DNA of 64,000 nucleotides from Takakia lepidozioides. Its lineage: Eukaryota; Plantae; Bryophyta. The stretch lies in contig CM060731.1 of the NCBI GenBank assembly GCA_030704615.1, forward strand, positions 29,884,001 to 29,948,000. Reading direction: 5' to 3'. The notes under the pieces are model-generated. The model did not search any database. It was not told the origin of the DNA and saw only the letters and a program-made list of their open reading frames with translations. The position numbers and the translations under genes were made by a program. Shown here piece by piece: positions 37,303 through 62,979 of this stretch (within the stretch, counting starts at the first letter, position 1; each line of letters begins with the position of its first letter).

Positions 37303-37574
37303 TGCTAGAATTTTATTTTTTTAATAATTTCTTACTATGATTTCGTACTAAAATTCATAAAATATATACTAATGTACATAAAATGTGATATTCTAAATTA
37401 TGATCCGAAAAAGTGATCGACACCTCTTTCTCCACGTGACTACGTGTTGTGGAATAGTTATATGTCACGCACACATAAGTTGTGTGGAGAGGAAGTGAGG
37501 AGAGAATGAGCCTCCACTGGCTTATTTGCCCTCCCCATCTCATTCCTCGGTCCACGCGTAAGGCACACCTTCTA

Positions 37575-38790
37575 GAAGCGACCGCCACCATGGCGGTCGC
37601 TACATTTTAGAAAAATAATAAAAAAACGACCGCCAGTAATTGCGGTCGCTCTATTTAAAAATTAAACAATAAAAACGATCGCCAGTAACGACGAGCGCTC
37701 TACTAAAAAAAAACAAAAAATAAAGCGACCGCCACTACTGGCAGTCGCAACATTTTCAGAAATTAAAAATATACAAGCGACCACCAGTAATGGCGGTCGC
37801 TCTATTTAAAAAAATGAAAAATAAAAGCGACCACAAGAGCTGGCGGTCGCAGCATTTTCAGAAATTAAAAATATACAAGCGACTGTCAGTAATGGCCGTC
37901 GCTTTAATTTTTATTTTATTTAAAAAAAAAAACCGCAAATAATGGCGGTCGCTCTATTTTTGTTTGTAAAATAAAATACGACCGCCATTACTGGCGGTCG
38001 CTGTATTTTCAGAAACTAAAAATATACAAGCGCCCGCCAATAATGGCGGTCGGTCTAATTTTTTTAAACAAATGACCACCAATAATGGCTGTCGCTCTAT
38101 TTTTAAAAATAAAAAATAAAAGCGATCGTCATTACTGGCGGTCGCTGGATTTTCAGAAATTAAAAATATACAAGCGACCACCAGTAATGGCGGTCGCTCT
38201 ATTTTTTTTAAAAACAAAAACAAAAACGACCGCCAATAATGGCGGTCGCTCTATTTGTTTTTTAAATAAAATAAATGCGACCGCCATTACTGGCGGTCGC
38301 TGTATTTTCTGAAATTAAAAATATTTTTAATATTTAAAAACAATTACTATATTTACTATTTCTAAAATAAAGCGACCGCCATATTATGGCAGTCGCTGTT
38401 TTTTTTGTTTTTTTGGAATTAAAGTGACCACCATATTATGGCGGACGCTGGTTTTTTAATATATTTGTAAAATAAAGCGACCGCCATATTATGGCGGTTG
38501 CTTGCTTTTTATATATTATTGAAAACAAGCGACTGCCAATTCTGGCGGTCGCTTGTTTTTTTTAAATATTTTCAAAATTATGCGGCCGCCAATACGGAGG
38601 TCGCTATATTTGAAAAAAAATTAGACGACCGCCAAGGCGACCGCCAATTTTATTTTTTTAATAATTTTTTTAATAATTTTTTTTAAGCGAACGCCATGTT
38701 GGTCAGTCTTATTTCTAAAATTCCGAAATATAAAGCGATCGCCAAAAGTGACGGTAGCTCTTATTTCTAAATTTCCGAAATATAAAGCGA
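37575..38790. repeat. Array of palindromic GCGACCGCCA-N(2-5)-TGGCGGTCGC units with AT-rich spacers (transposon subterminal/foldback-like)
   Basis: Roughly 25-30 variably degenerate copies visible; the array is cut mid-unit at 38791. Confidence 0.85.
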
Positions 38791-39247
38791 CAGGAATAGG
38801 GTGCCATAGTGCCACGTTATCGTCGCCACGTCATTGTAGCCACGTCATTGTAGCCACGTCATCGTAGACACGTCATCGTAGACACGTCATCGTAGCCAGG
38901 TCATCGTCGTCGTCAATTTCTTTGGAATCTGCCCGGACGGCCCGCGCGAAATAGGCCAATAGAAATCACCGCGCCAACGTTTTTGGAACTGCCTGCAATG
39001 CCTGGATCTTGATCTTCTTGAACTGCAGGAGCTCTGTATTTTCCGCCATCGTTCACCTTGCAAGCACATGCATGGATAGCTGAAGGAGCAGGGATTGAGT
39101 GTGGGTCCAGATTCATCCAAAAGGGCCGGATTTCAAGCTCCAGATTAACTATGATTCGAATAGAGAAGAAAAGAGGGAAAGAGAGGAAGGGGAGGGAAGG
39201 AAAGGATGGACCAATGAACACACCAGGGATGGTCTCTGCTGTAACAG

Positions 39248-39366
39248 AGCAAATGAAATATGTCGTGAATCAAAGCGACAAACCATCAATGCTGAGGATG
39301 TGCTCAAAGTTGTTGTGGAGCTGGACCTCACCGAGTTTTGTGAGCCCTTGAGAGCTGCACTTGCAG
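39248..39366 (+). pseudogene. Captured exon of a DPB4/NF-YB11-like histone-fold protein
   Basis: AG|ANEICRESKRQTINAEDVLKVVVELDLTEFCEPLRAALA|GT with both splice sites retained; no other exons nearby. Confidence 0.75.
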
Positions 39367-40589
39367 GTGTGTATGGTTCTCTCTCTCTCTCTCTCTCATG
39401 ATGATTTGCAGTGATGACTTAAGTGGATTATTTGAGTTTTTTGTTCTGTCTTTCTTTATGGGGCAAGGTGCCAGATCAAACTCTAGTAAAAACCCTCTTC
39501 AGGGAACACCTCATAAGTTTGAAAAAGCCAAAAAAATCAACAAAGACACTAATCTTTCTCACACTCTGTGTATCTTCCCTGGCCCTTGTTGGGGTCTAAT
39601 TGTTGGGCAGCTCACACACAGCAGATTGATGCTCGTGTGAAGGGATTTCTAGGAGAACCTGGAAAGCTGTTTATACCAAGGTAAGTCCCACTACTGGAGT
39701 GAGCCCCTGACAAAGGTAGCGTCTGTTCCCTCTTGTTCTACCCAAACTGGGCGTAGGGTCTATGACAACATCATCTCATGAGTACATTATATGTCTTCCT
39801 TTTGCATGACTTATCTAGACTGTCTTTAAGGAACAAAGTTCTTGAGCAGTTATGGGTGCTTGTAGGCTTCAGGAAAGGGTATGGAAACTTAGGCCTACGG
39901 AGAGATGAAGGGAGCGGTAGGGAAGACGATTGTAGCTAGGAAAAGGGCGGTGTGCCATGGAAACTTGTGTGGTCAAGTTGTGAATATTACCCTAGGGTAA
40001 GAGGGCAGTAATGGGTACTTAGGATAGATGTTGTTGAAATTTCTTGGTGATGCTCTCAAGTTAGCATGAGAGAGGTGATAACTTTCTGAAAAATGGAATG
40101 GAGGGACTGCCTGGACTTCAAACCAGGAAGGTGTAGAGAGAACGAGAGGTGATGCAAGCATTGCAGTGGAATGTTGATTGAGGGGAGATTCTCCAAACCC
40201 TCAGTCACAGAATGTATTGTTTTGATTCTATTTTCTTTTCTTTCTGGTTCAGCACTGTGAGTCTGGAATCAACGTAGTGGTGATCATACCTGCAAAGTGC
40301 ATGCTGTAGAAACAAGTAAGATTTGCTGGTCAGTATTACAGCATAGGAATGAGGGTTCAGTTTACCAAGAATTAAGGCCTGGCATATGCATGCACAAAGT
40401 AGTGGAATGAATGGTAGATCTCTTGCAAACTGTTGGGTGCTTCTGCATTGCATGTAGCTGCATAAGTGACATTGTCATTTCATGTTAGTTGTTAGACTGA
40501 GAGGGATCTGTTTCTGGAACTCTGTTAATTGGGAGTTGAATGCAAACAAAGTTGTTCTGTAGTTGTATTTACTGACTGACAAACATTCT

Positions 40590-41230
40590 CGATACACTCA
40601 CATTTGACATACATGTCCAGCAGGGCTGTGTTCAGGATGACATCTGGTACAAATCAGCTTTGACAATGTCACCATGGACCTCATTGCACCTTTCCAGGGC
40701 TGCCAGGCTTGCACACGCATTGCAAATGCAAACAAACATCAACAAGCTTCTCCTCATCTATGTTATCTGTTTTTGGATACTTTCCTGCTGCCACATCGGC
40801 AGTAACTTGTCAAAGTCACTCCTAACCACCACAGATACACCCAATGACCCATGGAGACCTGCTAGCACAACACATGACCACCCTTCTGATTGCATCTTTT
40901 TCTCTCTGTATCCAATAGGCACAGAAGAATCCCAGTGTTGTCGTCTAGTTGGGCTGAGTGTGATGGACTAACTTATTTCTGGCTGTTTGCTGCTGCAGAC
41001 CTTTTTGTCTCCATTGTCCCACCATCGGCTAGGGTCGGAACAGTGAAATGGTGCAGCTAGTCAGGTAGAGATTGAAACACGGCGCATACATATCGACAAG
41101 GAAAGTCTCCAGAATGATATCTGGTTTCCAGCTTCCACCATGTCAACATGGACCTATGTACCTTTTTCCAGGGCTTCTAGGCTGACACAAGCATTGAGAA
41201 TAGAATGAATGTAAATGTTGTTGGGTGTTC
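40590..41230 (-). pseudogene. Short PLS-PPR fragments interleaved with unidentified cargo
   Basis: CNACASLAALERCNEVHGDIVK...VPDVILNTALLDMYVKC at ~40590-40735; a second PPR piece at ~41090-41230. Confidence 0.7.
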
Positions 41231-41512
41231 ATACATCTGGCAATCCGCCCTACACAACAGCCATGCTGATCATCATCTTGCAATGATCAGACGCTCTCAG
41301 GCCCTATTCTGATGAGAGGGAAAAACATGCTGAAATAGGTCGAAGAAGAAGGTGCCCTCACCACATTGTCCTTGACCTTGTGGTCATGACCCATGGAGGA
41401 TTTGACGGACCATCACCCAAAGGACCTTTGTGTACACGTTCTGCTTTTGTCTGTAGTCAGGTAATGTCGGATTGGTCTATGAGAACCACCACGGTGCAGC
41501 TGAGCTGCAGGG

Positions 41513-42060
41513 TTTGCATGGACAATTGAGTGCCAACACGCCTTCAAGGAACTGACATTGTCAGTAACAACTACACTGTGCTGATTAACCCACATTGGCT
41601 ATGATATTTCATGTACATTGTGATGCCTCAGGAGAAGCTTTGGGAGCTGTGTTAGCTCAAAACGTCATAGGAAACATAGACTCACCTGTGTACTATGCTA
41701 GCAGATTGTTGAACAGTGCTGAGAGGAACTATAGCACTACTGAAAGATAAACTTTGGCAATGATTTATGCAGTCAAGAAGTTCAGGCATTGTTTACTTGG
41801 AAGGAAGTTTATATTTTATGTGGATCATCAGGCTCTGATTTATTTGGTGAACAAGCCTTTCATAAGTGGAAGGATAACAAGGTGGCTGATTATCCTACAT
41901 GAGTTTGAATTCGAAGTTATTTACAAACCTGGACGGTTGCATCTGGTGGCAGATCACTTGTCACGCCTCGCAACAGGAGAGCCCGCCACAGGAGTGGATG
42001 ATCAACTACCTGATGCTAGTTTATTTGCAGTAGAGGTAGGGGCTGATGACTGGATGGATT
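41513..42060 (+). mobile_element. Ty3/gypsy pol fragment (connection and RNase H)
   Basis: FAWTIECQHAFKEL, HCDAS...LGAVLAQ, YYASRLLNSAERNYSTTER*, VDHQAL, YKPGRLHLVADHLSRL; in-frame stop; no LTRs. Confidence 0.88.
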
Positions 42061-42494
42061 GGTAGTGGCCAATCAGATATTATTTGAAAATATCTAAAAT
42101 AAAAAATATATTATGGAGACACAAAAATGTACTCACAAGAGAAACATTGTGAAACTATTCCAAATGTAACAATATAACCTTTTCTTTCGGATTAGCTCTA
42201 ACCAAGGTTAGCACTACTCACAACTCCGATTACTCCATACCAACCCCGTATAGGGTTTTAGTATCGTATCTGGGGTAAGTTTTTGTATGTAAAACCTATT
42301 GAGTGTATTCGTAAAGTTTAAAAACATTGTTTCCATTGCAGAATGCCAAGTGAACTCCGGCTGATAACGCAATGGAGAGTGCTAGTCAGGGTCCATTATG
42401 GCCGGTTTGGTGTCTTGCCTCTACTTCCTCCTCGCCCTAAGAAATGAATTGAGCGTTTTTCTACCCATATTTGTGGATAATAAAGTATGAAGTA

Positions 42495-42655
42495 TGACGC
42501 CTCCCGAAGGAAGCGTAACTTATGGAGTCACTTCACCCCGAAGGGCTACTGCCTTCCGCTAGGAAGGTGGACACCTTCATGACATACCAGACCGTGGTTT
42601 GAACCCACAACCACATCCAACGTGGTATGTGCCCATTACCACTGGGCTACATGCT
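42495..42655 (-). mobile_element. tRNA-derived SINE (family shared with 58095-58240)
   Basis: TGTAGCCCAGTGGTAA...GGTTCAAACC boxes; body similar to 58095-58240. Confidence 0.6.
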
Positions 42656-42949
42656 GGTTGTCTTGTGGATAATACTTTCTAGACTAGGGCTTCGCGTTGC
42701 TCCGCACTACTAGCGACGAATTCTGATAACTATGTTCAATTTTCACAAAAAGGGGTGGGTTATCCCCATGGTGTTATATACAAACATCCCGTATTTCATT
42801 GTTTTTCAGAAGAGTATGGCGAAGTGTTGCCCAAGCTATCATGTCACGTCTCCACATTTCCTTGTTTGATGCAGCTAATTCTATCTATGCCCAAGAAGTG
42901 AGGGGGAGGGATTTAGCATTTGTTTTGTCTAGAACGGAAGTCGGTTGAG

Positions 42950-43175
42950 AATTTATTTATTTATTTATTTAAATGAAACCTGGGAACGACTGCTCACAAT
43001 TCAGGCCTTGAGGAGGGGAAAAAATTAACTCAGATAAGCCATTAGGCACACAGGTGGGAAACGTCACCACCAGACCAACCGGTCACGAACAATCCACACA
43101 CCAGGCAGGGCAGTGGGTTTGAACCCCCAACCACCAGGGCGACACACTGTGCACTTACCAGCTGAGCTACCAGCT
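42950..43175 (-). mobile_element. tRNA-derived SINE
   Basis: GTAGCTCAGCTGGTAA A-box, GGTTCAAACCC B-box, (AAAT)n tail. Confidence 0.7.
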
Positions 43176-43900
43176 GATGTGCGAATTTTGAGAACTACCG
43201 TTCAATTGGCACAAAAAGGGGTGGGTCATCCCCACGCATACAATGATTCTTTTGATAATTGGAAATATATACTATGCAGAAAACATGAGGAACTATGCAA
43301 AAGTATAATCGTCATAGGCATACCCCTATCTATGCCCAAGAAGTGAGGGGGAGTTGAACCCCCTTTTCTGCCCGGTAAAATTGCGGGATTGTCTGTGAAT
43401 ATGGGAGACTTTGTGACCATCAAGTGCCACTCAAGATATTGGCAAAACCTCCGAAAGAAGAAACATTGGATTTCTTTCCAGATAATAGCAGTTAAACTTT
43501 TGGCCAAAACTCCTATACACGTAGAAAATACGGAATTTATTAAAGTTGTAGTTTGGTAAATCTTTGAAAAAACCTGTGTAAAACATTGAAAACAATTATC
43601 AATGACTAAACAATTATTTTTTTATGAAAAAAGATCACTTCTCTTGAAATTGTCCTGTCTCTTTGTATCTTTTGATTGGAAATGTATATTATGCGAAAAA
43701 AAATTTACCTCTCTGTGGATGTTATAAAGTTCATTTCTCTTTCTCATTCTGTTCTAGTTGATACGCCCTCTTCACGAAAACAAACAGCCACATCTCGCCA
43801 GATTTGTGAGCATATGAGCATCACATTAGCCAAAGCCACTTGCAAGGCTATGAAGATGGAGGCATGTGCTCTGTCCTCTCTCTCACAACAGAGGAGGTAC

Positions 43901-44145
43901 CTTCTCAACTTGCTGCCTACTAAGGTCAACCAGGAGCTGCTCCATAGCCTTGCAATTTGCCATGAAGCTCTCGTCCTTGATATCAACCCTGTCTTTCAGT
44001 ACATTTAACCCCTGATCCAAACTCATAAACCCCCTCCAGCCACCTGAAATTAAGGAATCAATCGATGGAAGTGACAGTCTAAGAATGTACTCACCAAACA
44101 ACATTGCATTGCTGATGAAGCTGCGTAAGGCCTCCTTGTCTGCAG
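43901..44145 (-). pseudogene. Captured N-terminal exons of methylcrotonyl-CoA carboxylase beta subunit-like gene
   Basis: VLKDRVDIKDESFMANCKAMEQLLVDLSRQQVEK|GT resembles the plant MCCB N-terminus (recalled from memory). Short GT-AG intron at 44094-44044. Confidence 0.55.
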
Positions 44146-46384
44146 CCAAAGTGCTTTACTGTTGGAGTGATACCATGATCTTGACTCAGGGAATCAAAGT
44201 ACCATATTCCTTCATTTAGTATGCCAGTGTGGCTGCATGCAGAGAGAACACATATAAAGGTTGTCCAGCTTCAAGCCATTCTTTTGCATTCCCTTCAAAT
44301 AGTTGCAGGACCTCCCTATGACAATATGCTGGGCATATCCTGTGATCATCTCATTCCACATCTAGCATACATGTCCACAAGGGGATTGTTCAGAACTACA
44401 TCTGGTACAATTCCAGCTTTGGCGATGCAACCATGCCCTTTTCCAGGGCTGCCAGGCTTGCATACGCACTGCAAACGCACGCAAACGTGATGTGGTCGGG
44501 CTTCACCACCCCCCCTCATTTGTTCAAAGGTCTCCAAAGCCTCGAGTCTGTCTTGCTGCAATCTCTCGTATATCTTGAAAGCCTCCTTGCCACATCCATG
44601 TTGAGCACACCCTGCGATCATGGCGTTCCATGATACTATCTCTCGTTTAGCCAATTGTCAAAAGCTTGACGCGCATCTTTTATGCTCCCACATTTTGCAT
44701 ACGTGTCCACAAGCGTAGTGTTCTTATGTAGCATGCAATTCCAGATTTAATGATGTCAGCATGGATCTCTTTGCCCTTCTCCAAGGCTCCCAGGCTGGCA
44801 CATGCATTGAGAACACAAGTGAAAGTGACGCTGTTGAGCGTTAGCCCTTTATTTTGCATTTGTTCATACATCTCAACAGCCTCCCTGCCATACTCATGCG
44901 GAGCGTATGCTGCAATCATGGTCCTCCATGAAACCACATCATGTTGTGTCATATTGTCACCTGCCAGATGCGGCGTAGATGTTGGATAACAGCACATAAG
45001 TTGCATGGTGGTTGGGATCGCACTTGAGAAGAGATTTTGCTACATGTTTTGCTACCTCCACATCCCCATGAATTCTGGCAGTAGCAAGCAAGGTCCCCCA
45101 AACCAGAGCATCTGGTTCAATTGGCATTTTGTTGATGAAGTCCTCTCCCTCATCTCATCGGCCTACACGGCCAAGAAGGTCCACAATGCAGCAAAAATGC
45201 TCCACTGTAGGAGTGAGGCCGTGATACCATCTGGCTTCAAGTCTTCCTGCTGCATCTGTTCAAATAGTTGGAAGGCCTTTGTACTACACCCATGCTGAGC
45301 ATATCCTACAATTATGGCATTCCATGCTTGCTGAACCATATTTTCAAACACTTGACGTGCATCGTGAACACTCCCACATTTGGCATACATGTTAACAAAG
45401 GCATTGTCCAAGTTAATATATGACACAACCCCAGCTTTGTTAATATCAGCATGGACCCGCGTGCCCTTTTCCAGGGCCCCTAGACTAGCACATGCATTGA
45501 CAACAGAAACGAATGTGACCTTGTTCGGTGTCATCGCGTCCAGTTCCATTTGCTTGTATCTTGAAAGCCTCTTCAGCATAGCCATGCTCAGCATATCCTG
45601 TAATCATGGCATTCCATGAGACCACATCTCGTTCAGGCATTTTGTCGAAAACCTGACGTGCATCTTTTCCACTCCCACATTTGGCGTCAAGAAGGTTGTT
45701 CTCCACTTTAATATCCTGCAATCATTGCACTCCATGAGGGCTTCACCACTTCCCCCATCATTTGTTCATAGGTCTCCAAAGCCTCCATCCCGGGCCCCTA
45801 CTGTGCATACCCTGCAAGCATAGCGTTCCACGACACCACATTTCTTTCAACCACAGTGTCGAAACCTCCCTTTGCATCCTCGATCCACCCATATTTGGCA
45901 TATGTCCATCAGGGCAGTGTTCAAGGGCAGTGTTCAGGATGAATCTGGTGCAATTCCAGCTTTGACAATGTCACCACAGACCTCTTTCCTATTTTCCAGG
46001 GCTCCTAGGTTTGCACACTCATTGCAACCTTGGTACAATTCCAACTTTGATGATGTCATCATGCACCCTTTGCCCTTTTCCAGGGCTGCCAGGCTTGCAC
46101 AAGCATTGCAAACACACACATGCTGTGCATATCCTGCAAGCATGGCATTCCATGACATCAAATCTCGTTCAGCCATACTGTTGAACACTTCATCCGCATC
46201 TTTGATGCACCCACATTTGGCATACATGTCCACGAGGGTATTGTTCAGAATCACATCGGGTATAATTCCAGCTTTGGCGATGCAACCATGCACCTCTTTG
46301 CCCTTTTCCAGGGCTGCCAGACTTGCAAACGCATACAAACGTGATGTGGCTTCACCCCTTCCCCCATCATTTGCTCATAGGTCT
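44140..46384 (-). pseudogene. Mosaic PLS-class PPR fragments including E1/E2 and L2-like motifs
   Basis: Repeated [34 protein letters not shown] and NTALVDMYAKCG. E-domain MPIEPDALVWGTLL...YVLLSNIYAASG at ~44960-45130. ACSHTGILNEG...DHGITPTVKHFGC at ~44140-44260. Many frameshifts. Confidence 0.9.
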
Positions 46385-47238
46385 CACTACAACAGATCGC
46401 GGTATTTACGACTGTATATATGACTATTCTGCAGTCATAAACGGTACATATGACTTCTATGACTGTAAGTCGTGCAAACCAAGTCAATACAATGAGTACA
46501 GGATGGTACGGTCCGGATGACTACAGTCATATGAACCAAGTGATATCTCTCACTGCAGTCATATATACCATACTGCAGCCGCCGCCGCTGCCGTGCCATG
46601 TGGCGAGGCGCAATTGATTTAAAAAATTAAATTAAATTAAATTAAAAACTAAAAAAATAAAAATATATGTCAAACGCCGCGTCGCACCGCATTGTGCCAC
46701 GTGGCATAATGCATTTTATAATAATGAAAAAACCACGTGGCAGTCCATCTAGGGTACCACGTGCTATCCCTAGCTCGCCTACTAACCCTAGGGCCATCTT
46801 ATCTATTTGATTGTACTTAGAGAAGTTTGAACCTACAACCTCTTTACTATAAGAGTTATAGTTCACTACTTGTCAACCAATACACCCATTAGTCATTCAT
46901 ATGATCATATAGTGTTTTAATTGTATTCTACACACCAAATTACAAAATCCCCAGTAGTCATCATGACTATGTAACCTCATCCATGTACACTGTAGTCATG
47001 GAAATGACTATGAATGGTGAGCTAAATCTGGTCAATTGCCGTTGACCAGCCTTCCGCCCATTCCGGAGCCATGTAGTCATATAGACGACTATTTAGATAG
47101 TCGTTCATATGACTACAGTCGTATGAACGACTGCGGGAGATCAATTTCATATAAAAACATGGTGCAGTCATGGTCAAAGTCATGAAAACTATGACTACCA
47201 CGGTTTGGCAGTCATAACTACCGTGATCTGTTGTAGTG
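46385..47238. mobile_element. Non-autonomous CACTA (En/Spm) element
   Basis: TIRs CACTACAACAGATC.CGGT / ACCGTGATCTGTTGTAGTG, exact 3-bp TSD TCT, subterminal tgacta/tagtca repeats; interrupts a PPR motif. Confidence 0.93.
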
Positions 47239-48745
47239 TCTCCAAAGCCTCCATCCCACGCCCCTGCTGTGCATACCCCTGCAAGCATCGCGTTCCACGA
47301 CACCACATCTCGTTCAGCCATGGTGTTGAAATTAACTCCCTTCGTATCCTTAATGCACCCACATTTGGCATACATGTCCACCAGGGCAGTGTTCAGGATG
47401 ACATTAGGTACAATTCCAGCTTTGACGATGTCACCACGCACCTCTTTTCCCTTTTCCAGGGCTCCCAGGCTTGCACACGCATTGCAAACACAAACAAATG
47501 TGATGTGGTTGGGCTTCGCCCCTTCGCACAACATTTGCTTCTAGGTCTCCAAAGCCTCCATCCCGCACCCTTGCTGTGCATATCCTGCAATCATCGCACT
47601 CCACGACACCACATCTCGTTCAGCCATACTGTCGAAAACTCCCTTCATACATGTCCACAAGGGTATTGTTCTGAATGACATTTTGTACAATTGCAGGTCT
47701 GACAATGCACCCACATTTGGCATACCTGTCCACCAGGGCAGTGTTCAGAATGACATCTGGTACAATTCCAGCTTGGACGATGTCACCACGGACCTCTTTC
47801 CCCTTTTCCAGAGCTCCCAGGCTTGCACACACATTGCAAACAACAAATGTGATGTGGTTGGGCTTCGCCCCTTTGCGCAACATTTGCTCCTAAATCTCCA
47901 AAGCCTCCATCCTGCACCCTTGTTGTGCATATCCTGCAATCATCGCACTCCACGACACCACATCTGGTTCAGCCATACTGTCGAACACTCCCTTCATACA
48001 TGTCCACAAGTGTATTGTTCTGAATGACATTTTGTACAATTGCAGGTCTGAAAATGCACCCACAACACCACATTTTATTCAGCCATATTGTTGAACACTG
48101 CCTTTGCATCCTCGATACCCTACAAGCATGACATTTCACCACATTTGGCATACATGTCCACCAGGGCAGTGTTCAGGATGACATCTGGTACAAATCCATT
48201 TTTGACGATGTCACCATGGACCTCTTCCCCCTTTTCCAGAGCTCCTAGGCTTGCACACGCATTGCAAACACAAACAAATGTGTTGCAGTTGGGCTTCACC
48301 CCTTCGCACATCAATTGCTCATAGGTATCCAAAGCCTCCATCCCACATCCTTGCTGTGCATATCCTACAATCATCGCACTCCACGACACCACATCTCATT
48401 CAGCCATACTGTTGAACACTCCCTTTGCATCCTCGATGCACTCACATTTGACATACATGTCCAACAAGGCAGTGTTCAGAATGACATCGGGTACAATTCC
48501 AGATTTGATGATGTCACCATGGACCTCTTTGCACCTTTCCAGGGCTGCCAGGCTTGCACACGCATTGTCATCGCACTCCACGACACCACATCTCATTCAG
48601 CCATACTGTCAAACACTCCCTTTATACATGTCCACGAGGGTATTGTTCAGAATGACACTTGGTACAATTGCAGCTCTGACAATGTCGCCATGGACCTCTT
48701 TCGCCCTTTTCCAGAGTTGCCAGGCTTGCACACGCATCGCAAATG
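47239..48745 (-). pseudogene. Tandemly amplified, frameshifted PLS-PPR units
   Basis: About five related blocks (catcgcactccacgacaccacatct..., ccagggcagtgttcag.atgacatc.ggtacaattccagc). Two ~360-bp units share the same aberrant junction. Confidence 0.9.
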
Positions 48746-48782
48746 CACACAATCTCAACAAGTCAATTGTGGTCATAAGATA

Positions 48783-48885
48783 CATTTTTCCAGTCTCTGC
48801 CATATTTCCAAAATGCTTGATAGAAGAGCTCCAGGTCCTCTTTGCTCCAGGGAGGTCCAAGCATGTCCGACAATTTGCGCTTCTG
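48783..48885 (-). pseudogene. Captured exon of ALWAYS EARLY (Lin-9/DREAM) Myb-like domain
   Basis: [33 protein letters not shown]|GT matches the plant ALY N-terminal motif. Confidence 0.8.
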
Positions 48886-50779
48886 ATCACCAGCCTGCCC
48901 ACTCACCTCAGTCCCATAACTGCATTCAAGCAGCATCCAAAATTGGATTTCACTCTTGCTCACGCTGGGTGTGCTACCCATCTGCCCAGTCCCAATGGCA
49001 CCATTGCTCCTAGATATGGAATTTTGCCGGGATCCAACAACCTGCAACCTGACATCACCAGAATCAGGCAAATTGTTCAATTGAATGCCTTTGATGAGGA
49101 TGGATCTATAGGCAAAAACAGAAAGAGAGCTCAATTTGCTGGGACAGAAAGTGCTATTCCTTCTTCAAGTTGCTTAAAGGGCTCATGCTCAGGTCTATGG
49201 GCACTCCCCTTTTTCATTATCACCACGTTTAACAAAACAATGGTCACAAAAATAATGACCAAGAAGGCTGAAACATGGAAAAAGAGCAACCTTCAGCTTT
49301 GAATGTCAGTCTCACAGTTTGCATTTATTTTTTCCAGTGAACACTGGTTATAGGGAGATTATGGCGGACAGACAGCAATTACAATCTAGTCAATGTAAGA
49401 TTAGGTTTGAAACTTAGGTCTAGTTTCAAGCAGATGTGGGACTTTTGCAACCAGACACAACCTGACATATCCTTCGTGCTTATGGAAAATCAATCATGGA
49501 GACTCACTGTGCCGGTCTGAAACAAGGAAGTAAGGTGTAATCTAAGTTGCACTTTTCTTCTTTCCCACCCAATCACGAGTGAAAGCTTCCGATTCCGTCT
49601 GCAAGAAACTCCTCCCCATTTGTTGTCTTTTCGAATCATAGGTAATCTGGAGCTTGAAATCCGGCCTTTTTGGATGAATCTGGACACACACTCGATCCCT
49701 GCTCCTTCAAGCTATCCATGTCTGTGCTTGCAAGGTGAACGATGGCGGAAAACGCAGAGCTCCTGCAGTTCAAGAAGATCAAGATCCGGGCATTGCGGGC
49801 AGTTCCAAAGACGTTGGCACGGCGATTTCTATTGGCCTATTTCGCGCGGGCCGTCCGGGCAGATTCCAAAGAAATTGACGACGACGATGACGTGGTGATG
49901 ATGACGTGTCTACGATGACGTGGCGACGAAACGTGGCGACGATGACGTGGCACTATGGCACCCTATACCTACTCTACGCTAAACTAGCTTCCGACCTTCG
50001 GTCGTCGCTAGAATTTTTTGACAAAACTATAGATTGTTTCATTGGCGAGATCTAATGTGCTTCTAGATTTTGCCAAAACACAAGATTGATAAGCTGATGA
50101 AACCTATTTTTGTCTACAAGAAATTTTTTTGTGTTTTTACAGGGATGTTGGACTTGAATTATTGATATTGGCATTCATACGTGTTTTTTTTTTTTTTTTT
50201 TTTTTTTTTCCCCTAAAGAGAAAGGGAGGTAGCCCTTGAGAACTTTATTCATGATTACATTTGAAGGGAGAAAAATTAAAACCCTTTGAAGCCCGAAGAT
50301 AGCCATGAGGCACAGACTCACGAAGAATCGTGAAGGATAATCCAAGTAACAATAAACGAGGTTGGGTAGCACGTGTGCACTGACATGAGCATGCTCATGT
50401 GAGGACAAGGGTATATTCCCAGAATTTCCACGAAATTTCCGTGAAATTTCCACAACGAAATGAAATTGGCGAAACAGCTAACACATAAAAAACAAGTAGC
50501 CCCTATACCTGATGAACATGTTACCCTATAGGCGTGGCTTTTTCTCCATTATAGACGCGAGAGTTAGGCAATGAAGTTTAAAGTCCTCACCCATGGATAA
50601 TTTCGCATGGCGAAACTCTGCCTAAGAAGAAATCACACTGTAGCTAAAAAGATGAATATGTCACTTTTAAAGCCCCCACCTTAATGGGTCCATGATGGCA
50701 AAATCAGACTCCTGATATTCAACTACTGGTGCTTTTCGGCGTTTTTTCCCCCCCATAATACAAGTAGCCGACCCATTAC

Positions 50780-51330
50780 TCCTGTTGAGATCTAGCGATT
50801 TTTTGCCCAGAAAAGATCTGAATTTCCAAGGGACCATTATGTGCAGCTGTTGCTCAATTAATGCCATCGAATCTCTGGAACACTGCTTCATCTATTGCTG
50901 GCCCCCCATTCTATTTGGCCATTGGTGTCAGGGTTCTACCTTATCTAGAACAGCCTATCGATGCAACCGGTGACACTTCTCTTCAATTATGAGCAGGGAA
51001 GAAAAACAATAGCCACTAATTGGCCCGTGTTCGAGGCATTGAGACACTCAACCCTTTGGCACTTGTGGAAAGCATGGCGTGGTTGGACCTTGGAAAGGAA
51101 AAACACGTCAGAAACAGCTCTGCTTACCAGGCTTGTCTACTTTGATGTCATAGTTGCTGCCAAAAAAACGTGGTTGGTCTTCTGTGCAGCTATCGGAAAA
51201 AAACCAGAATGTCAGCACTTGCTCCTCGACACCTTCAGAGCAACTTAGGGTAGGCAAGGTCACGTATGCAGCTGCATTGAAGCTCACTCCTGCGTCTGGC
51301 CACAAAGAACTACCCTTCTATGGCAGCTGC
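50780..51330 (+). mobile_element. L1-type LINE ORF2 C-terminal remnant (zf-RVT region)
   Basis: CSCCSINAIESLEHCFIYC and LWHLWKAWRGWTLE motifs, frameshifted. Confidence 0.6.
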
Positions 51331-53527: not shown

Positions 53528-55576
53528 TCAAGCCCAAATGCCAACAGCCGCCATGGCAAGGGCTCCTGAGAAAAGGGCCAAATAAGACCACAGTTGCAGG
53601 CTGCATTTGCCTTGCAGGCGCTTGCTTAGGAAGTCCGCCGCGATGAGGTCTACCAATGACATGTACACAAGAATGCCTGCAGATATGGAGTCGAATATGC
53701 CCTCCACAATGAGTGCCCTTGGACTATTCTCATTATAGCTGGATGCAATTCCCAGTCCAACTGCAATTCCTGCCGGGGTGGTAACCGCAAAAAAAAACGC
53801 CATCACTGTAGCAGACACATAATTGAAAGCTGCCTGTCCCCCACCAACAGCGGACAGTATTAGAATTCTTCCTAATAGTGAGCTAGTCAGTCGATTCTAG
53901 ATTAATTAGGCCTATCCAGGGGAAAGTGGGGTGGTGTCAAGGAAGAATAGGTCAATCACCAACATCTGACAGCAAATCACCACATTCCAGTACACATTAG
54001 GCTAGTATGTGTGGGGAAAAAGAAGGCAGGAAAAATGAGAGGCACGGTTGCAGTGGGTACCCATCAAAATGACTCTCTGGCTAACACCACTTTCAGCAGA
54101 AAAGAAGAGAACAAATTGCCAACCTGGGAGATGCAGCCACCAAGGGCAAACCCTTCAAAAAACTGATGGAAGACGAGAGCAGCCATGAGGGGTCTTATGG
54201 TACAGGGGCTTTGTGAGACACCCAGTGCTATCCCTATGATCACCGAGTGAGCCAAGATGCCAATTTCCAACACCTGCATGTTTGCAAACATAGCAATTGT
54301 AGTCAACACGTCAGAAAATAAATTAAGTATGCAGTGCCTGTAGGTCTATATGTCCATGTAAGCTACCTGTGAAAAATCACATTTTCCAGCTTAAAAGACC
54401 ACTATCTAATGGAGTGTGCAAACTAGCTTACTTGTGCAATAACCACGTGTCTGATATGTGAGACACTGTCATTGAATGGAGGGAGGTCATGAGTGTGACC
54501 CAGATGCCCTGGAACATTGTCTTGAACATGGGATGCTGCATGGGCGTTCATGCCAACTATGTGTAACTGCTCGTTCCCATTCTGCCCTCCTTCGACGTCC
54601 TTGAATTTGCTGGAGGGCGCATCTGCGACTGCTTTGTACCTTTCTCCCCCTAGATGAAACAAAAACTAATCATTAGCTAGAATGCACAAGCCTGCCACAC
54701 ATGAACTAATGGTTAGTCCAGCTCCAGAATGGTCCACAGTCATCTCTTTGCATATCCAAAATGAATCTGGCATGGGAAACATCAAGGACCGCACAAGGGA
54801 ACCTAGCATGGCACATGAGCAAGCGAATTACCATCTTTGTGGACCTGCTCTTTCGATCCTGGGATCACTACTGGTATTTAGGTTTGTGACCACTTCATTC
54901 TGCAGCTATTTACCACTGCTTAACCTAAATTCAGCAGCTTGTCTTGACGCTGCCAACATCCTACACATGCGTGGAATCCAGATGTATGAAAAGAATCCGG
55001 TGGCCATGTGAAAGTGTTTCAAGAACCATAGCTTATTTGAGTAATGACGGGGCCTCCTTGAAGGCCTGGCAAGATCAGTTTCCGTCCGAAAAAAGGTATG
55101 TTTCGAAGTACTAAGCAAAAAAGTATGTATGGTGCAACCTTACCCGCGTGCGCCGGTAGGGGCTCCCCATTCTCCCCATTCTCAATCTCGCCTCCATGAT
55201 TTTTCTTCCTCCCATAGAACTCAGTAGCAGCAAAGTCAATAACTAAGGTCCCAAGTGCCGCTAGCATGGAAAACAACCCAAAAAATGGATACTTGGACCA
55301 TGGAAAAGCAGGCAGGCAACTGCTGTTCAAGGCATTCGCTGCATCCGGCAACATGTGCACAAATGCAGTCGCCAAGATGACCCCAGCTGCAAACGCCTTG
55401 GCAATGAAGAAAACATTCCCATCTGTCCTCAAAAAACTTAGCCGCCTTCCCACAAGGGGTAATGCTACACCAAGGGCACTGGCAAAGAGAATCAACGCTA
55501 CTGCAGCCAATTTTAAACGTAGAGCCTCCGGCTTATCTCGGCACGAGAGATCCAATGAAGCTCCACAGTCTGCCAT
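53528..55576 (-). CDS. ZIP-family Zn/Fe transporter (ZIP4/IRT3-like), 4 exons
   Basis: Exons 55576-55144, 54649-54432, ~54273-54124 and ~53834-53528. Motifs [17 protein letters not shown], His-rich loop, [33 protein letters not shown]. Confidence 0.94.
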
Positions 55577-55790: not shown

Positions 55791-56264
55791 GAGGGACCGG
55801 TTCGTTCACCTTCTTATACTTACCTCTTTTCCTTTTTAAAAAGGGCAGACAAATCAGGTCCCCCGTTTTTCTTTTCTTTTTTTGTATGTATATTCTTATA
55901 CCTTTTTTATAAAAACATTTAGAGAACAGGGGACAGAGGCTTCCAGTGTTTTTTTTTCTGGCGAAAAATCGCCAGATTTCGACCTGAAAAATGGGTCGGC
56001 TACTTTTACTAAGGAGTTATGGGAGTAAAAATAAAAAAATCTCCAGAAAGCGCCACAAGTTAAATAACATGAGCCAGATTTTTCCTACGTGGACCTAGTA
56101 AAACATGACACTTGTATAATATCCACTTTTCTAACTTTGTTACCTCTTTATTCTCGCCACATGGGCACTGGGTAAAATCTACATGTCGCCATGCCTGCGA
56201 TTTTGGAAAAGTGACAAAAAATTATTTATTGATAAGGTGTAAGGAGAAAATAACCTTACAAAAC

Positions 56265-56465
56265 CTTTTTTTTTTTTCCAAAGGGAAACACCTGGGAGTG
56301 ACAGACTGAATAACCTCTTTCACAGTAAGCGTGGCATGGAGGCTGAGAAGTGGGACACCGCCCAGGGAAGGGGGAGAAGAGTAATACCACACCCGTCAAG
56401 TAGCAGGATTTGACCCCAGAATCATCCGGGTGGCACTCAGTGTGCTTACCAACTGAGCTACTGAC
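56265..56465 (-). mobile_element. tRNA-derived SINE
   Basis: GTAGCTCAGTTGGTAA A-box, GGTCAAATCC B-box, T-run on the + strand forming the tail. Confidence 0.75.
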
Positions 56466-56799: not shown

Positions 56800-57772
56800 T
56801 GTTGGAAATCAACTCCTGACCAAGTTACTACTACCTAGAGTTACTGTGATGACAAGTCATGCTTCCATAATAGGAGTGTTGTCAAGTCACAGTTAACAAT
56901 AGAGATAAGCCTCGGTTAGCTAAAGTTAGCTTGACTCAAGTCATTGTACCCAAATAGCAGGTGGAGATAACTTAAGTAAAAGCATGGAGTTATGCTATAG
57001 TTATCTCAGCTATTTCTGGATTAGACTTTGAGTATAAATAGGAAGAGCTCGGAGGGTGGACACACAACTTGTTGTGGTCCTATGGTTTGGTGGAGAGTTC
57101 TCCGTAATCAGTTCATATTTTATCTCTATTCTCTGTCAAATTCCAACATGGTATCAGAGCAAGGTTCTGTCTGAGAGATAGAAGGAGATGAGTATTTGAT
57201 TTACAACCAATAGGCTTGAGCGCTTGGGGTTAGATCTGAAAGCTTGAATGCTTGGAGTTGAGTGCTTGGTGTCAGATCTGAAAGCTTGAGTGCTTGGAGT
57301 TAGATCTAAAAGTTTGAGGGTGTTTTATGGTTGGCAAAACATCAAACCAGTATCATGGCACACTCTGCTGATCATACCTGAGTGTGCTTAACTTGGTAAT
57401 TCGTTGAGTGGGGGTGTTGGAAATCAACTCTTGACCAAGTTACTATTACCTAGAGTTACTGTGATGACAAGTCATGCTTCCATAATAGGAGTGCTGTCAA
57501 GTCACAGTTAACAATAGAGATAAACCTCGGTTAACTAAAAGATAGCTAAAGTTAGCTTCAGTTATTAGTGACTCAAGTCATTGTACCAAAATAACAGGTG
57601 GAGATAACTTAAGTAAAAGCATGGAGTTATACTATAGTTATCTGAGCTATTTCTGGATTAGACTTTGAGTATAAATAAGGAGAGCTGGGAGGGTGGACAC
57701 GTTTGTTGTGGTCCTATGGTTGGGTGGAGAGTTCTCCGTAATCAGTTCATCTTTTACTGTCAAATTCCAACG
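56800..57772 (+). mobile_element. Complete TRIM (terminal-repeat retrotransposon in miniature)
   Basis: LTR1 56800-57148 (TG...CA), PBS TGGTATCAGAGC (tRNA-iMet) at 57149-57160, ~265 bp non-coding interior, PPT GAGTGGGGG, LTR2 57415-57772 (ends CG), 5-bp TSD GTTGT. Confidence 0.95.
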
Positions 57773-57789: not shown

Positions 57790-58435
57790 TTATACGGAGA
57801 GGAAAAAATAATCTATAAAAGAAACCTCGATATGAGGCACCAATCTCACAAGGCTCATGGGACACCGCCCAAGGGAAGGGGGAGAAAACCCGATAAGGTA
57901 ACACGATTTGAACCCAGAATCACCTTGGTGGCAGTCAGTGCTCTTTTGAATTGAGCTTACTGGCTGGTGGTTTGACCATTTTTAAAAGATATTTTTAGTA
58001 AATTATTAAGTTTATTTAATTCCCATTTAATTTTTCTGTTGAAATATAAAATATATTTGAGGTTCTCAATTATAATATAATATAATATAATATTCGACGC
58101 CTCCAAAAGGAAGTGTAGGTGTCTCTTGACCCACTGGCTTCCCCTCGGAAGATGGACACCTTGTGACACCAATTGGTGGATTGAACCAACAAGCACTTCT
58201 GAGGTGGTAAGTTATGTGCCCATCACCACTCGGCTACAATTTGGTGTCAAATATGAGCCTAGCTAAGTCAGTTGGATGCTGCAGTGAGTACTAGGCAGGT
58301 GCTACTAGGTTCAAATCCTGCTAGCCTACATAGTTGTGTGGGTGGTATATTTGTCTCCCCTGTGCTGCAACATAGCCTTGTGAATTTGGCACAGTTAGAG
58401 CATCCATACCACTGTTGTGCAGGTAGTCCCTTTTT
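57790..58435. mobile_element. Cluster of three tRNA-derived SINEs (two minus, one plus)
   Basis: B-boxes at ~57905-57915 (-), ~58180-58190 (-) and ~58308-58318 (+, GGTTCAAATCC). Confidence 0.6.
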
Positions 58436-59255: not shown

Positions 59256-60660
59256 GTCCGGGTCCTAACTAATTGATTAAATAAATTGGAAATTACAAAT
59301 AATTAGAAATATAATTACATTTGGCTAGAAGAAAACTAAATCCGAATTGGTAGATTTTATTTTAAGACATATTCTTTCAAGATGTACTGTCCATACTCCT
59401 TCACAAATTATAACATGATGACACAGGAATTTAAATATAATTTAAGATCCACCCATCTTTTTCAATTCTTACATGGTAAGAAAAATAAGTTGATGCTGCT
59501 GAAGAAACGGAATGAGAGATGTGTAGATGGAGCAGGCCCGATTGAAGGGGATTTGGACCTGCAATCCTGCTAGTATCTGTCCCCTATTTGTTGATAAATT
59601 GCTGTTCCAAAGTGAATATCACAACTGACATCAAAATGTTGTTCAATGCTTCACTGCGATGGGTATTTGGTTTCTATCTGAAGTATGGAGAAGAAAGGTT
59701 TTTCACATATGAAGGTAGTGAATTCTGAGAACTAGGTAGAGAAAAGAATTCCTTACGTTGTGTTGTTTTACAGCTTCTTTTACCCATGGGTAGTTTCTAC
59801 TATCGGCCTACACAGGCCTTCAATTCTGATGGAGTGAAAGTCAATGGTTTACACATAGCTCCAGAAGCACTATGTAGGCATCAAGCACGTCTAACCTGGA
59901 GTTCTGCTTTCATTGTCTTTTGAAATAATAATAATAATAATATGCCTCGTAGGTCACTATAGCAAGAAAACCGCCCACCACACCCTAAACAAACAAAAAT
60001 CCAAATGAGAGAGAGTAGAAGGGGCATTATCTACGAGAAGCTCATATATATATATATATGACACTAGCCGAAGCTAGCGTAAATGAGAGCCTCCTCCCCA
60101 TGTGGGTTCCGCCCCTTTTGAGGGGTGGGCTCTATCAGAACCTAAACAATATCACCGTAGCTAGCTGACCACTTTCAATCTTACGCTTGTTGATGATAAG
60201 AGATGTGAGCCAAGTGATAGCTGTAAAATGTATGGTACCTAGGAAGGGGGTGATATGCGTAGGGGGTAGTTTGAGGTTCTCTTGAAGGATGTGGACGTTG
60301 TGGCTGTGTGCAGCTCCTCTTGCACCTGCAGTCATAATAGTCAGGGGAGCTGTGTTGTGTTGGGCAAGGCCCTTCTAAGGGGTTCGTATTTGTCTATTTC
60401 GTATTGGATGGATTGATGTGGGTATCTATCATGGCAGAATGTGAATTCTATAATATGAATAGTAAGGGATGGTAGCGGAGTGGGAGGAGAGACGGCACAA
60501 GTATAAGGTAAGAGCTACATTTTATTTTATGTATTATGGAGTGGGCAAGCCACTGGCCATCCTACCAATCAAATGTTACAGACCTTAATGGTCAAACTGG
60601 TGATAACTTTAAGAGCATAATGAGCAGTTCTACACGACATCGTAATGGGCTTCAACAATA

Positions 60661-61186: not shown

Positions 61187-61628
61187 TAGGTTATGTAACT
61201 CAAGTGTTGCTTATTTATTGTCATAATATGGTGCATGCATACTAGGACCGGGAATATACGTGCTATCCCCGCTCCGTCATTCCCCACCCCGTTCTCGTAT
61301 GTTCCCCCATATTGGTCATCTCGTGGTCGCCAAGCTGCTGGTGGGAAACAAGTATGCCCTCTCTGACACGGCCATGGTCACATTGACTCGGTTTCAAGGG
61401 CGGGTTCAAGTCATTGTACACTGCGCCCGGGTTCAGGGTTCCAAATGACATAGAGAGTCCGCCTTTTATGGTTCAAGGGCAAGGGTTGGACCAGTGTTTT
61501 TTTTCTTGCAAAATCGTCAGATTTCGACCTGGAAAATGATTTCAGTCTCCTCCACCGTAGCACCAAAAGAAGTTTCCGTTGAGTTTTGACAAATCATTCT
61601 AGCGGTCGAGAGCTAGTTTAGCGTAGAG

Positions 61629-62890
61629 CAGGAATAGGGTGCCATAGTGCCACGTCATCGTCGTCACGTTTCGTCGCCACGTTTCATACGTCGTCAATTT
61701 CTTTGGGCCCTGCCCAGTCTGCCCGAAAATAACTGGGAAAAAAACCCGCGTCGTTTACAAGGTTCTTGGAAGAGTCAGCTTGGTCTTGCGCTGTGTTTCA
61801 ATCTCTTTCTGCTCAGCTGCACCGTGGTGGTTCTCACAGACCAATCTGGCATTACCTGACTACAGACACAAGCAGCACACAGAATGTGGAACCTTTGACC
61901 AATGGTACGTGAAGGGGTGATGCCCACCAAGGTCACGTTCGTTTCTGCTCTCAGCGGCGTGTGCCAGCATAGGTGCCCTGGAAAAAGGGAAAATAGGTCC
62001 AAGACATTATGAAAGCTGGAATTGCACCAGATATCATTCTAGAGGCTTCCCTTGCTGCCATCTATGCCAAGTGCGGAAGCATGAAGGAGGCCCGTCGAGT
62101 TTTCGTCAATATGGCTGGACGAGATGTGGTTTCATGGAGTGCGATGATTGCAGGATATGCTCAGCAAGGGTGTGGTCAGGAGGCCTTGGAGACCTATGAG
62201 CAAATGATATGGGAAGGGTGGGTACCGGACAAAGTCACATTCACTTCCGTTCTCGATGCATGTGCCAGCCTAGCAGACCTGGAAAAGGGCAAAAAGATCC
62301 ATGCTGATATTATCAAAGCCAGAATTGAGCCACCCGGCATCCTTGAGCGCGGAGGGGTTTCACGCAATATGGTGACGGCACCCTCTTCTTCGACCTATTT
62401 CAGCCTGTTTTTGCCTCTCATCAGACTCGGCCCTGAGATGCCTGTTATCAGAATCAGCCCTAAATTTTCATGTTGAATTCTGCAAGTTAGCTGGTTGACT
62501 AAACCTTTGATAGTTTGGAGTGACTGACATGATACTGCCAATGTGACAACAGGAAAGTATCCAGAAACAGGTAACAGAGACGAGAAGCTGTGGAATGAAT
62601 ACTTTTCTGACCCCTGTTAATGGTGGGACAATCGAGGCAAAAAGGTAAATGCCTGTTGGATTACAGAGAGTAGCAGATGCAATTGAGCATAGGAACTAGT
62701 GTGATAAGTTGAGTTGGGTGTTTCCTAGAACAAATCTAGGCTGTCATTGTCAGCTGCTAGCAGCAAAGCAAGGATGTATGCATGATTTGTACATAGGCAT
62801 GGATAGCTGAAGGAGCAGGGATAGAGTGTGGGTCCACTAGACTCATCCAACAGGGCCGGACTTCAAGCTCCAGATGACCTATGATTCCCT
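61629..62890 (+). mobile_element. Second member of the Pack-type TIR family (left end plus cargo; right end not in window)
   Basis: CAGGAATAGGGTGCCATAGTGCCACGT terminus as at 38791. Cargo is a PPR fragment plus pieces homologous to 40740-41370 and 39070-39155. Confidence 0.75.
61870..62330 (+). pseudogene. PLS-PPR fragment
   Basis: AIYAKCGSMKEARRVF...[16 protein letters not shown]...TFTSVLDACASLADLEKG; fused to unrelated sequence after RIEP. Confidence 0.85.
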
Positions 62891-62979
62891 GTGGATCAAT
62901 AGCTACAAGAAACCTGCATGGGGAAATGGTCAACTAACTAGCGCAACATAGAGAGTGCAGCAAACAACGTCTTAGGAAT

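Follow-up and report, generated by a model that had tools for sequence, protein, structure and literature searches.

A pair of inverted arms about 11 kb apart, with a patchwork of gene fragments between them, raises the question of what moved at this locus of the moss Takakia lepidozioides and by which mechanism. The original prediction read the interval, within the 64,000-nt stretch analyzed here (the window), as one long-TIR Pack element that collects and shuffles PLS-PPR modules with host exons. Instead of an 11-kb transposon with long inverted repeats, the interval most likely holds a rolling-circle (Helitron2-type) element, 7.3 kb long and packed with fragments of broken genes, which is faced by the damaged front end of a sister element. 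The mobile unit, hereafter unit R, is probably a non-autonomous element of the HLE2 (Helitron2/Helentron) type on the minus strand, running from 50012 to 42684 (probability of about 0.72; Table 1).

Table 1. Coordinates of unit R, its cargo, and neighboring features in the window
Feature	Position	Strand	Remarks
Palindrome array	37571..38789	+	~23 palindromes, 52-bp period; fused to left arm
Left arm, probable head of sister element	38790..39171	+	Opposite direction; without outer ~40 nt; no 3' end found
Captured DPB4/POLE3 (NF-YB-fold) exon	39248..39366	+	Both splice sites
Exon-like piece	39578..39788	+	GT donor; 75% copy at 23103-23332
Block opposite to left head's orientation	40584..41505	-	Two PPR scraps and three pieces common to copy 2
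Ty3/gypsy RT-RNaseH fragment	41510..42062	+	Pfam RT_RNaseH, E 1e-11
Unit R, probable complete non-autonomous HLE2-like element	42684..50012	-	5' end 50012, 3' end 42684; T flanks on both sides
Unit R 3' terminus	42684..42705	-	Twin GC-GNA-GC mini-hairpins 42689-42705; terminal CTAG 42684-42687, then T
Unit R 3' subterminal asymmetric inverted repeat	42710..42719	-	Exact 10-mer, 11/12 when extended
AT-rich 3' region of unit R	42720..43750	-	Old duplication 42717-42908 / 43182-43353; SINE-like insert (by sequence inspection) ~42960-43180
Exon	43901..44043	-	AG/GT-bounded; splice context
Decayed PLS-PPR block	44090..48760	-	~9 P1-L1-S1 triplets, one P2-L2-S2-E1-E2 end, second L2-S2 end; no DYW
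Nested non-autonomous CACTA element (MITE)	46385..47238	+	TIRs 17/18 identical; 3-bp TSD TCT; splits PPR motif
Captured Myb-domain exon	48784..48882	-	AG acceptor, GT donor; Pfam Myb E 9e-5; Atlas 0.88
Right arm, subterminal head of unit R	49619..49971	-	14-bp ACGT-core repeats 49882-49951; captured "PDF" piece 49633-49726
Unit R 5' terminal hairpin	49984..50012	-	T, CTAGC/GCTAG stem around CGACC-GAA-GGTCG hairpin
Copy 2, further 5' head of this family	61598..62890	+	T^T, shorter hairpin; carries PPR, shared pieces, "PDF" piece

Ends of the probable mobile unit and the facing arm

The right-hand end of the family lies approximately 40 nt beyond 49971, at 50011-50015: homology with copy 2 runs past 49971, and five long contigs of three runs (X4, X6, X7) cease matching at 50013-50015. 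A candidate terminus at 50028 was rejected because the contigs stop before it, and a 2-bp "AC" TSD at the ends originally assigned was discarded since most contigs carry G at 49971, where the A is private to this copy. CACTA ends were likewise rejected for the main element. Contig depth was taken solely as a rough sign of repetitiveness and not as copy number.

The first 10–12 nt of the 5' end of unit R constitute the subterminal inverted repeat, with which the predicted 5' hairpin is nested (z -2.2 to -2.8). The exact 10-mer occurs in the window only at 50002-50011 and 42710-42719 (0.02 expected by chance), and its placement is offset, 1 nt from the 5' end and 26–35 nt from the 3' end. The twin mini-hairpin pattern has a single perfect occurrence, 5 nt from the 10-mer, and appeared in 0 of 100 shuffles; jointly with the inverted repeat it arose in 0 of 3000 simulations, both tests using patterns drawn up after the site was seen. 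No stable long stem was predicted at the 3' end (z +0.7), where the mini-hairpins are 7 nt each, and one 3' end of this type was seen, that of unit R. The polarity, with the 5' end at 50012, follows from the hairpin with its GAA loop, from the T^T site, and from cargo orientation; the cargo adjacent to the head reads inward in all three heads. Unit R and copy 2 keep the terminal stem despite an internal 10-nt indel, as expected if the structure is read.

A T is present on both sides of unit R and before copy 2 (T^T), and the direct repeat TCTAG present at each junction of unit R permits a second parse. The flanks are AAAT and TCAT. Joining them rebuilds a copy of a repeat of which an intact version stands at 50061-50090 (score 34 versus 26, a result matched by 3% of random flanks). 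No combination of ends gave a TSD of at least 6 nt, which had been proposed as a check of the Pack reading; the longest direct repeat was 5 nt, and the left flank is possibly rearranged.

The inverted repeats of ~350–370 bp that were said to enclose the 11 kb do exist, aligning over 334 nt with 92% identity (38839-39171 / 49951-49619), but they are not terminal, since the family end lies about 40 nt outside 49971. With the 14-bp repeat arrays, the arms span about 38790-39171 and 49619-49971; their non-repetitive part differs at 14 of 262 aligned columns. Over its inner ~90 nt, each arm consists of sequence captured from a different, highly abundant repeat, and the same piece is located 1.1 kb inside copy 2, which is interrupted by a LINE RT region and has its 3' end outside the window. 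The outer 40 nt of the left arm are replaced by the 52-bp palindrome array; of the 15 nt with which this array begins, 12 are identical to the 5' end of unit R. The array as a mere target split by the insertion was rejected, because it does not resume on the right.

The left arm has the family-majority base at 5 of the 10 sites where the right arm deviates. It shares the base of the right arm at 49669, 49896, and 49897, the latter two within the 14-bp repeats, which align poorly, and has a third base at 49971. Thus, little marks the two arms as a pair. The "long TIR" is most likely an accident, in which a sister head of the same subfamily lies in the opposite orientation with its outer 40 nt lost or replaced. 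A single Pack-MULE- or Pack-CACTA-type element is not supported: a TSD is lacking, the position of the arms is subterminal, and in an HLE2-like layout the right arm has its own short partner end at 42684-42719, an internal element end that was overlooked when the 11 kb were taken as one unit. This likely corrects a misannotation in which two facing rolling-circle heads mimic a long-TIR Pack element, and it supplies a short two-end signature for a genome-wide census.

Captured exons and the PPR block

Several observations of the original prediction on the cargo were borne out. No transposase was found among the ORFs or Pfam matches, which gave the gypsy RT-RNaseH scrap alone, and P1/L1/S1, L2, E1, and E2 landmarks confirmed the PPR fragments. 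Capture of host DNA at the DNA level by a non-autonomous family also held, as the exons retain intron flanks and splice sites. The exons of three genes with splice sites were recovered in part by name. The DPB4/POLE3 exon, between the left head and unit R, matches proteins named DNA polymerase epsilon subunit 3 or Pol II subunit B4, and its AG and GT borders fall at the same alignment positions as in the homologous exon of L005. The Myb exon was confirmed, and we take it to be ALY-like. The exon at 43901-44043, which we assume to be MCCB-like, plausibly enough, has the expected AG/GT borders but obtained no name from Pfam, PDB, Atlas, or tblastn, exons having been searched singly by reference and not as a joined spliced model. 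Sibling contigs carry the same Myb exon with different neighbors, indicating that capture followed by amplification is real.

The pieces common to copy 2 (40750-40834, 41295-41368, and 41438-41505) received no names from searches, and Rfam gave no matches. HMMER with the reverse-frame translation of the "PDF" piece matched two bacterial repeat proteins without relation to it, scans of metagenome, viral, and bacterial collections for DNA patterns returned nothing or two chance matches, and exact-protein look-up with homolog searches for the PPR piece and the arm ORF recovered no other locus of the genome.

The PPR cargo is a frameshifted pseudogene without a DYW domain, split by the CACTA MITE. 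The block shows 10 frame switches among 28 motif landmarks, its longest open stretch is 146 codons, and it contains internal tandem duplications (349-bp unit). No DYW hallmarks were found in it, and it does not form the uninterrupted PLS array ending in E1-E2(-DYW) of a functional editing factor. The proposal that the family is an "engine of editing-factor diversification" accordingly receives no support from this frameshifted, DYW-less copy. Elements that scavenge genes in the manner of unit R are already known, and none of the present evidence shows that working RNA-editing factors are made. PPR motifs are so abundant in the genome (contig counts near or at least 128) that capture without special targeting suffices. 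Counts of PPR genes are inflated by the pseudogene fragments in copies of this sort.

Movement, capture, and alternative readings

Unit R may have moved by rolling-circle transposition, in which a RepHel enzyme supplied in trans would nick at the 5' hairpin, and one strand would be displaced as far as the 3' hairpins and then inserted at T^T. Host DNA (PDF/PPR pieces, the Myb exon, and the MCCB-like exon) may have been gained in successive steps, through read-through beyond the 3' end or during repair, and the captured cargo would afterwards have decayed through frameshifts, internal duplications, and the CACTA insertion. The insertion site T^TCTAG resembles the 5' end of the element itself, a likeness that might account for clustering and for head-to-tail arrays. 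Two heads about 93% alike and 11 kb apart exceed the prediction of random insertion, so that local transposition or rearrangement is needed. Several features count against the HLE2 reading, this proximity of two heads among them: no transposase is linked to the family in the data analyzed, a 3' end was seen in unit R alone, the inverted repeat is short and close to the 3' end, the CTAG 3' terminus is HLE1-like, and the TCTAG repeat also fits a 5-bp duplication or Replitron-type ends.

These ends allow for another single-strand (HUH) element, such as a Replitron, whose direct terminal repeats would here be TCTAG, or an HLE of reversed polarity with 50012 as its 3' end. Replitrons have short direct terminal repeats and occur in mosses (PMC10288648), TCTAG stands at both junctions of unit R, where it may be target sequence, and the 50012 end is more widely shared among contigs, as is usual for 3' ends. 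We nevertheless regard this as unlikely: the Replitron paper does not describe inverted repeats, and the GAA loops, T start, and sense cargo suggest that 50012 is a 5' end, as in FoHeli (PMC5148889). Even less probable is joint movement of the whole block 37571-50012 as a single composite made up of the array head and unit R. There are precedents for composite Helitron events (PMC4224331, PMC5148889), and both outer ends start TCTAG after T and match at 12/15; however, two facing 5' ends cannot start and stop one rolling-circle copy, there is no TSD, and the flanks of unit R alone, when joined, rebuild an empty-site look-alike.

The arms could also belong to one cut-and-paste Pack element, as originally predicted but with shifted boundaries and ~420-bp TIRs starting TCTAG; the 52-bp array would later have destroyed its TSD and the outer 40 nt on the left, and the motif at 42684-42719 would be incidental. 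The arms are 92–95% alike, share one captured piece, and have a common inner border, and the outer end of the array likewise starts TCTAG..CGACCG. Sola-type targets are AWWT, which the AT-rich AATT flank resembles. We consider such an element quite unlikely, since it has no TSD, leaves the exact internal partner end unexplained, and finds little that marks the arms as a pair, given the family-majority bases of the left arm (5/10 right-arm deviations). The 10-nt indel of copy 2, 5 nt from the terminus, is also hard to square with end binding by a DDE enzyme.

The broader idea, that in this moss an HLE2-like family targeting a mimic of its own 5' end is a main DNA-level vehicle dispersing and recombining PLS-PPR(-DYW) modules, some chimeras becoming expressed and selected editing factors, appears improbable to us. 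If true, it would offer an extra route for PPR expansion beside retroposition, which has been proposed for this process; Takakia has the lowest share of intron loss, 52% (PMC13386178). If intact, expressed PPR chimeras did arise from some copies, which unit R does not show, this would bear on the expansion of the PPR repertoire in editing-rich non-seed plants.

Comparison with known systems

Pack-MULEs and Pack-CACTAs resemble this locus in being non-autonomous, with chimeric host fragments and apparent long inverted arms. The long TIRs of Pack-MULEs lie at the very ends, whereas here the right arm lies 40 nt inside the family terminus and the left arm is joined to the array. Pack-MULEs have an 8–11-bp TSD and a G-start terminus, both absent here; the 3-bp TSD and CACTA termini of Pack-CACTAs are absent at the element ends and present just in the nested MITE.

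Canonical Helitrons (HLE1; maize, bats) share with unit R several host exons with introns, the lack of a TSD, and a CTAG 3' end followed by T. They begin with 5' TC, end in 3' CTRR, and insert at A^T; the 5' TC and 3' CTAG^T of unit R fit, yet the 5' flank is T in both heads. The 16–20-nt palindrome that HLE1 carries ~11 nt before the 3' end is absent from unit R, which has only the 7-nt mini-hairpins, and HLE1 lacks the asymmetric inverted repeat and 5' hairpin. The Phytophthora proto-Helentron also joins a 5' TT with a 3' CTAG. Replitrons (PMC10288648) resemble unit R in hairpins and in occurrence in a non-seed plant, and their short direct terminal repeats may have a counterpart in the TCTAG at both junctions of unit R, unless this is target sequence; they differ in that unit R has an asymmetric inverted repeat, and the accessible part of that source describes no gene capture.

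HLE2 elements differ from unit R in a 3' end made of one stem and a T-run, in place of CTAG after two 7-nt GNA mini-hairpins, and in their transposase, not seen for unit R. The heavy multi-gene cargo is rare in Helentrons according to Thomas et al. 2014; unit R adds a moss example of such capture by HLE2-type elements, thought uncommon. The inverted repeat (10 nt exact, 11/12) is at the short edge of the published 11–18 nt, and lies 26–35 nt from the 3' end, compared with 38–60 nt in HINE. In contrast, the elements HINE, DINE-1, and FoHeli share with unit R internal tandem repeats, the lack of a classical TSD, and an asymmetric inverted repeat of short length, one copy of which is at the 5' end and the other some tens of nt inside the 3' end; their 3' palindrome may correspond to the twin mini-hairpins of unit R. 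FoHeli also has a GAA-loop 5' hairpin nested with the inverted repeat, and its TNAT^T insertion is similar to the T^T of unit R with flanks AAAT and TCAT. HLE2 elements are known in Sphagnum (PMC11417382), and the layout of unit R fits the HINE/FoHeli definitions (PMC4067079, PMC5148889, PMC11417382).

Termini of the right unit

The original prediction took two inverted arms as the ends of a long-TIR "Pack" element at 38791-49970. The arms exist (38839-39171 vs 49951-49619; 334 nt, 92% identity), and both carry an array of 14-bp ACGT-core repeats. Judged from the sequence, however, they are non-terminal, since the family match to copy 2, a further 5′ head at 61598-62890, continues about 40 nt outside the right boundary. 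Among the contigs aligned to 48600-50600, five long ones from three runs lost the match at 50013-50015; coverage, a rough guide to repetitiveness only, was above 100 at 49967-49971, about 30–45 in mid-arm and 6 at junction 49721. No direct repeat longer than 5 nt was found at any pair of candidate ends.

A hairpin lies within the outer 40 nt of the right end and reads, inward from 50012, T, CTAGC, a GAA-loop stem, GAA and GCTAG; in copy 2 the stem is identical and the loop is 10 nt shorter. A k-mer search revealed that the first 10 nt of this terminus recur inverted at 42710-42719, giving two copies in the whole window vs 0.02 expected. Next to this repeat, reading on along the minus strand, come a GC-GNA-GC mini-hairpin pair (42705-42689), the only perfect one in the window, then CTAG (42687-42684) and T. 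The joint pattern, formulated post hoc with the site already seen, appeared in 0 of 3,000 simulations. Thus, the terminus at 50012 and its inverted partner end at 42684-42719 delimit a 7.3-kb unit on the minus strand, from 50012 to 42684 (the right unit).

Joining the flanks of this unit gives T^TCTAGAA, which fits an uninterrupted look-alike at 50061-50090 better (score 34 vs 26; 3% of random flanks perform equally well), lending modest support to a putative empty site. The 5′ flanks of the right unit (50014-50028) and copy 2 (61582-61596) agree at 12/15 positions (4e-5 by resampling). Together with the look-alike about 50 nt away, these flanks may reflect either a preferred target repeat or a common ancestral flank. 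A T^TCTAG target, if that is what the element uses, would resemble the start of the element itself and so favor insertion beside sister elements.

Features of the window (window coordinates)
Feature	Position	Description
"PDF" repeat, GPDFKLQ frame	49633-49726, 39070-39157, 62797-62930	
Myb exon	48784-48882	AG/GT kept
Further exon	43901-44043	AG/GT kept
Nested CACTA MITE	46385-47238	Complete; TIR identity 17/18, TCT duplication
Stretch inside CACTA MITE	46590-46800	CCACGTGG-rich, closing with a motif that resembles subterminal sequence of the family; plus SINE-like piece
SINE-like insert	42472-42675	12-bp target duplication; related to 58077-58238; adjoins 3′ end of right unit
Copy of exon-like piece 39578-39788	23103-23332	75% identity; AG and GT; within endonuclease V-like gene region
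Hairpin CTAGC-CGAA-GCTAG, then CGTA	60064-60077	Similar to family 5′ hairpin; perhaps end of a related small element
Small LTR element, TRIM-like in appearance	56800-57771	LTRs 56800-57147 and 57415-57771, 86% alike; TG..CA-type ends; primer-site-like TGGTATCAGAGC
Related small repeats	50410-50830, 55943-56280, 61491-61538	CAGTG-type ends; hAT-like MITEs by appearance
LINE reverse-transcriptase region	62930-64000	Interrupts copy 2
Ordinary host genes (ORF translations only)	1-31000, 55019-55576	Beta-1,3-glucanase-like, TAF6-like, WEE1-like kinase, F-box, endonuclease V-like, ZIP transporter-like

The left arm and rival readings

The left arm lacks the outer 40 nt; at 38790 it runs directly into an array of about 23 palindromes that recur every 52 bp. 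Of the first 15 nt of this array, 12 agree with the 5′ end of the right unit, suggesting that the array may have arisen by amplification of the left head's 5′ hairpin. The arm has cargo of its own that reads inward, namely a "PDF" piece, a DPB4 exon and an exon-like piece with a second copy elsewhere in the window, followed by an opposite-strand block (PPR scraps and pieces that also occur in copy 2) and a gypsy fragment. No 3′ end for the left arm was found on its own strand. The most likely interpretation is that this arm represents the head of a sister element in opposite orientation.

We put the probability at about 0.72 that the right unit is a gene-carrying, Helitron2/Helentron (HLE2)-like rolling-circle element beside this damaged head. 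A true long-TIR element whose left end was destroyed is improbable. The right arm differs from the contig majority at 10 sites. At five of these the left arm agrees with the majority, at three it shares the right arm's base (two of them within the poorly aligned 14-bp repeats) and at one it has neither; one more majority match falls within the 14-bp repeats. Little therefore pairs the arms beyond a common subfamily. A Replitron-type element, which would fit the TCTAG repeat at both junctions, is a less likely alternative.

Captured exons and PPR cargo

As originally predicted, no transposase lies between the arms: none was found among the ORFs, and the Pfam matches were to PPR, the E motif, Myb, an NF-YB fold and a remnant of a gypsy RT-RNaseH. 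The segment with the NF-YB fold represents an exon of DPB4/POLE3 whose acceptor and donor (AG/GT) align with those of the homologous exon in locus L005, and it was therefore captured at the DNA level, as had been proposed; the other two exons also keep their splice sites. Exons were searched separately. The Myb exon may be ALY-like and the further exon MCCB-like, the latter a name that no database search confirmed.

On its inner side, the arm includes ~90 nt captured from another, very abundant repeat ("PDF"), whose GPDFKLQ frame has no Pfam family; the loose ends of this piece run on into the context found at 62770-62930, 1.1 kb inside copy 2. This piece is joined to PPR sequence in DNA contigs and in contigs of both runs guessed to be RNA, a guess that is no proof of transcription. 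Sibling contigs contain the same Myb exon with changed neighbors. These joins and altered neighbors indicate that mosaics are being copied.

With the CACTA MITE removed, the 3.8-kb PPR block comprises about nine P1-L1-S1 triplets, one L2/E1/E2 end and one more L2-S2 end, its repeat number being partly due to local tandem duplication (349-bp unit, 93%). The frame switches 10 times over 28 landmarks, the longest open stretch is at most 146 codons, and the block contains no DYW hallmarks. Contig counts for PPR motifs of this type are close to saturation and Takakia is reported to have 2,016 PPR genes (PMC13386178); thus, PPR cargo is expected without enrichment. PPR expansion has been attributed to retroposition, with the intron-loss share lowest in Takakia (PMC13386178), a pattern compatible with an additional, DNA-based route. 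That the family is an engine of editing-factor diversification is unsupported by this copy, and we consider it improbable.

Relationship to known rolling-circle elements

HLE2 and its non-autonomous forms are recognized by a short inverted repeat, one copy at the 5′ terminus and the other some tens of bases short of the 3′ terminus, together with a hairpin nested at the 5′ end, a palindrome at the 3′ end and T^T insertion with no duplication (PMC4067079, PMC11417382). The right unit has such a repeat, the 5′ hairpin and T on both flanks. HLE2 is present in Sphagnum (PMC11417382). A RepHel acting in trans would mobilize the right unit by rolling circle, and its cargo may have been captured stepwise through read-through or repair. 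In FoHeli of Fusarium, the 5′ end begins with T, contains a GAA-loop hairpin and is inserted after TNAT (PMC5148889); the corresponding flanks in this window read AAAT and TCAT. The 3′ end of the right unit, CTAG, resembles that of HLE1, as is also the case in proto-Helentron. Membership in HLE2 is probable, and "HLE2-like" is the apt term. The right unit is probably a further example of a kind already known, the gene-carrying HLE2-like element.
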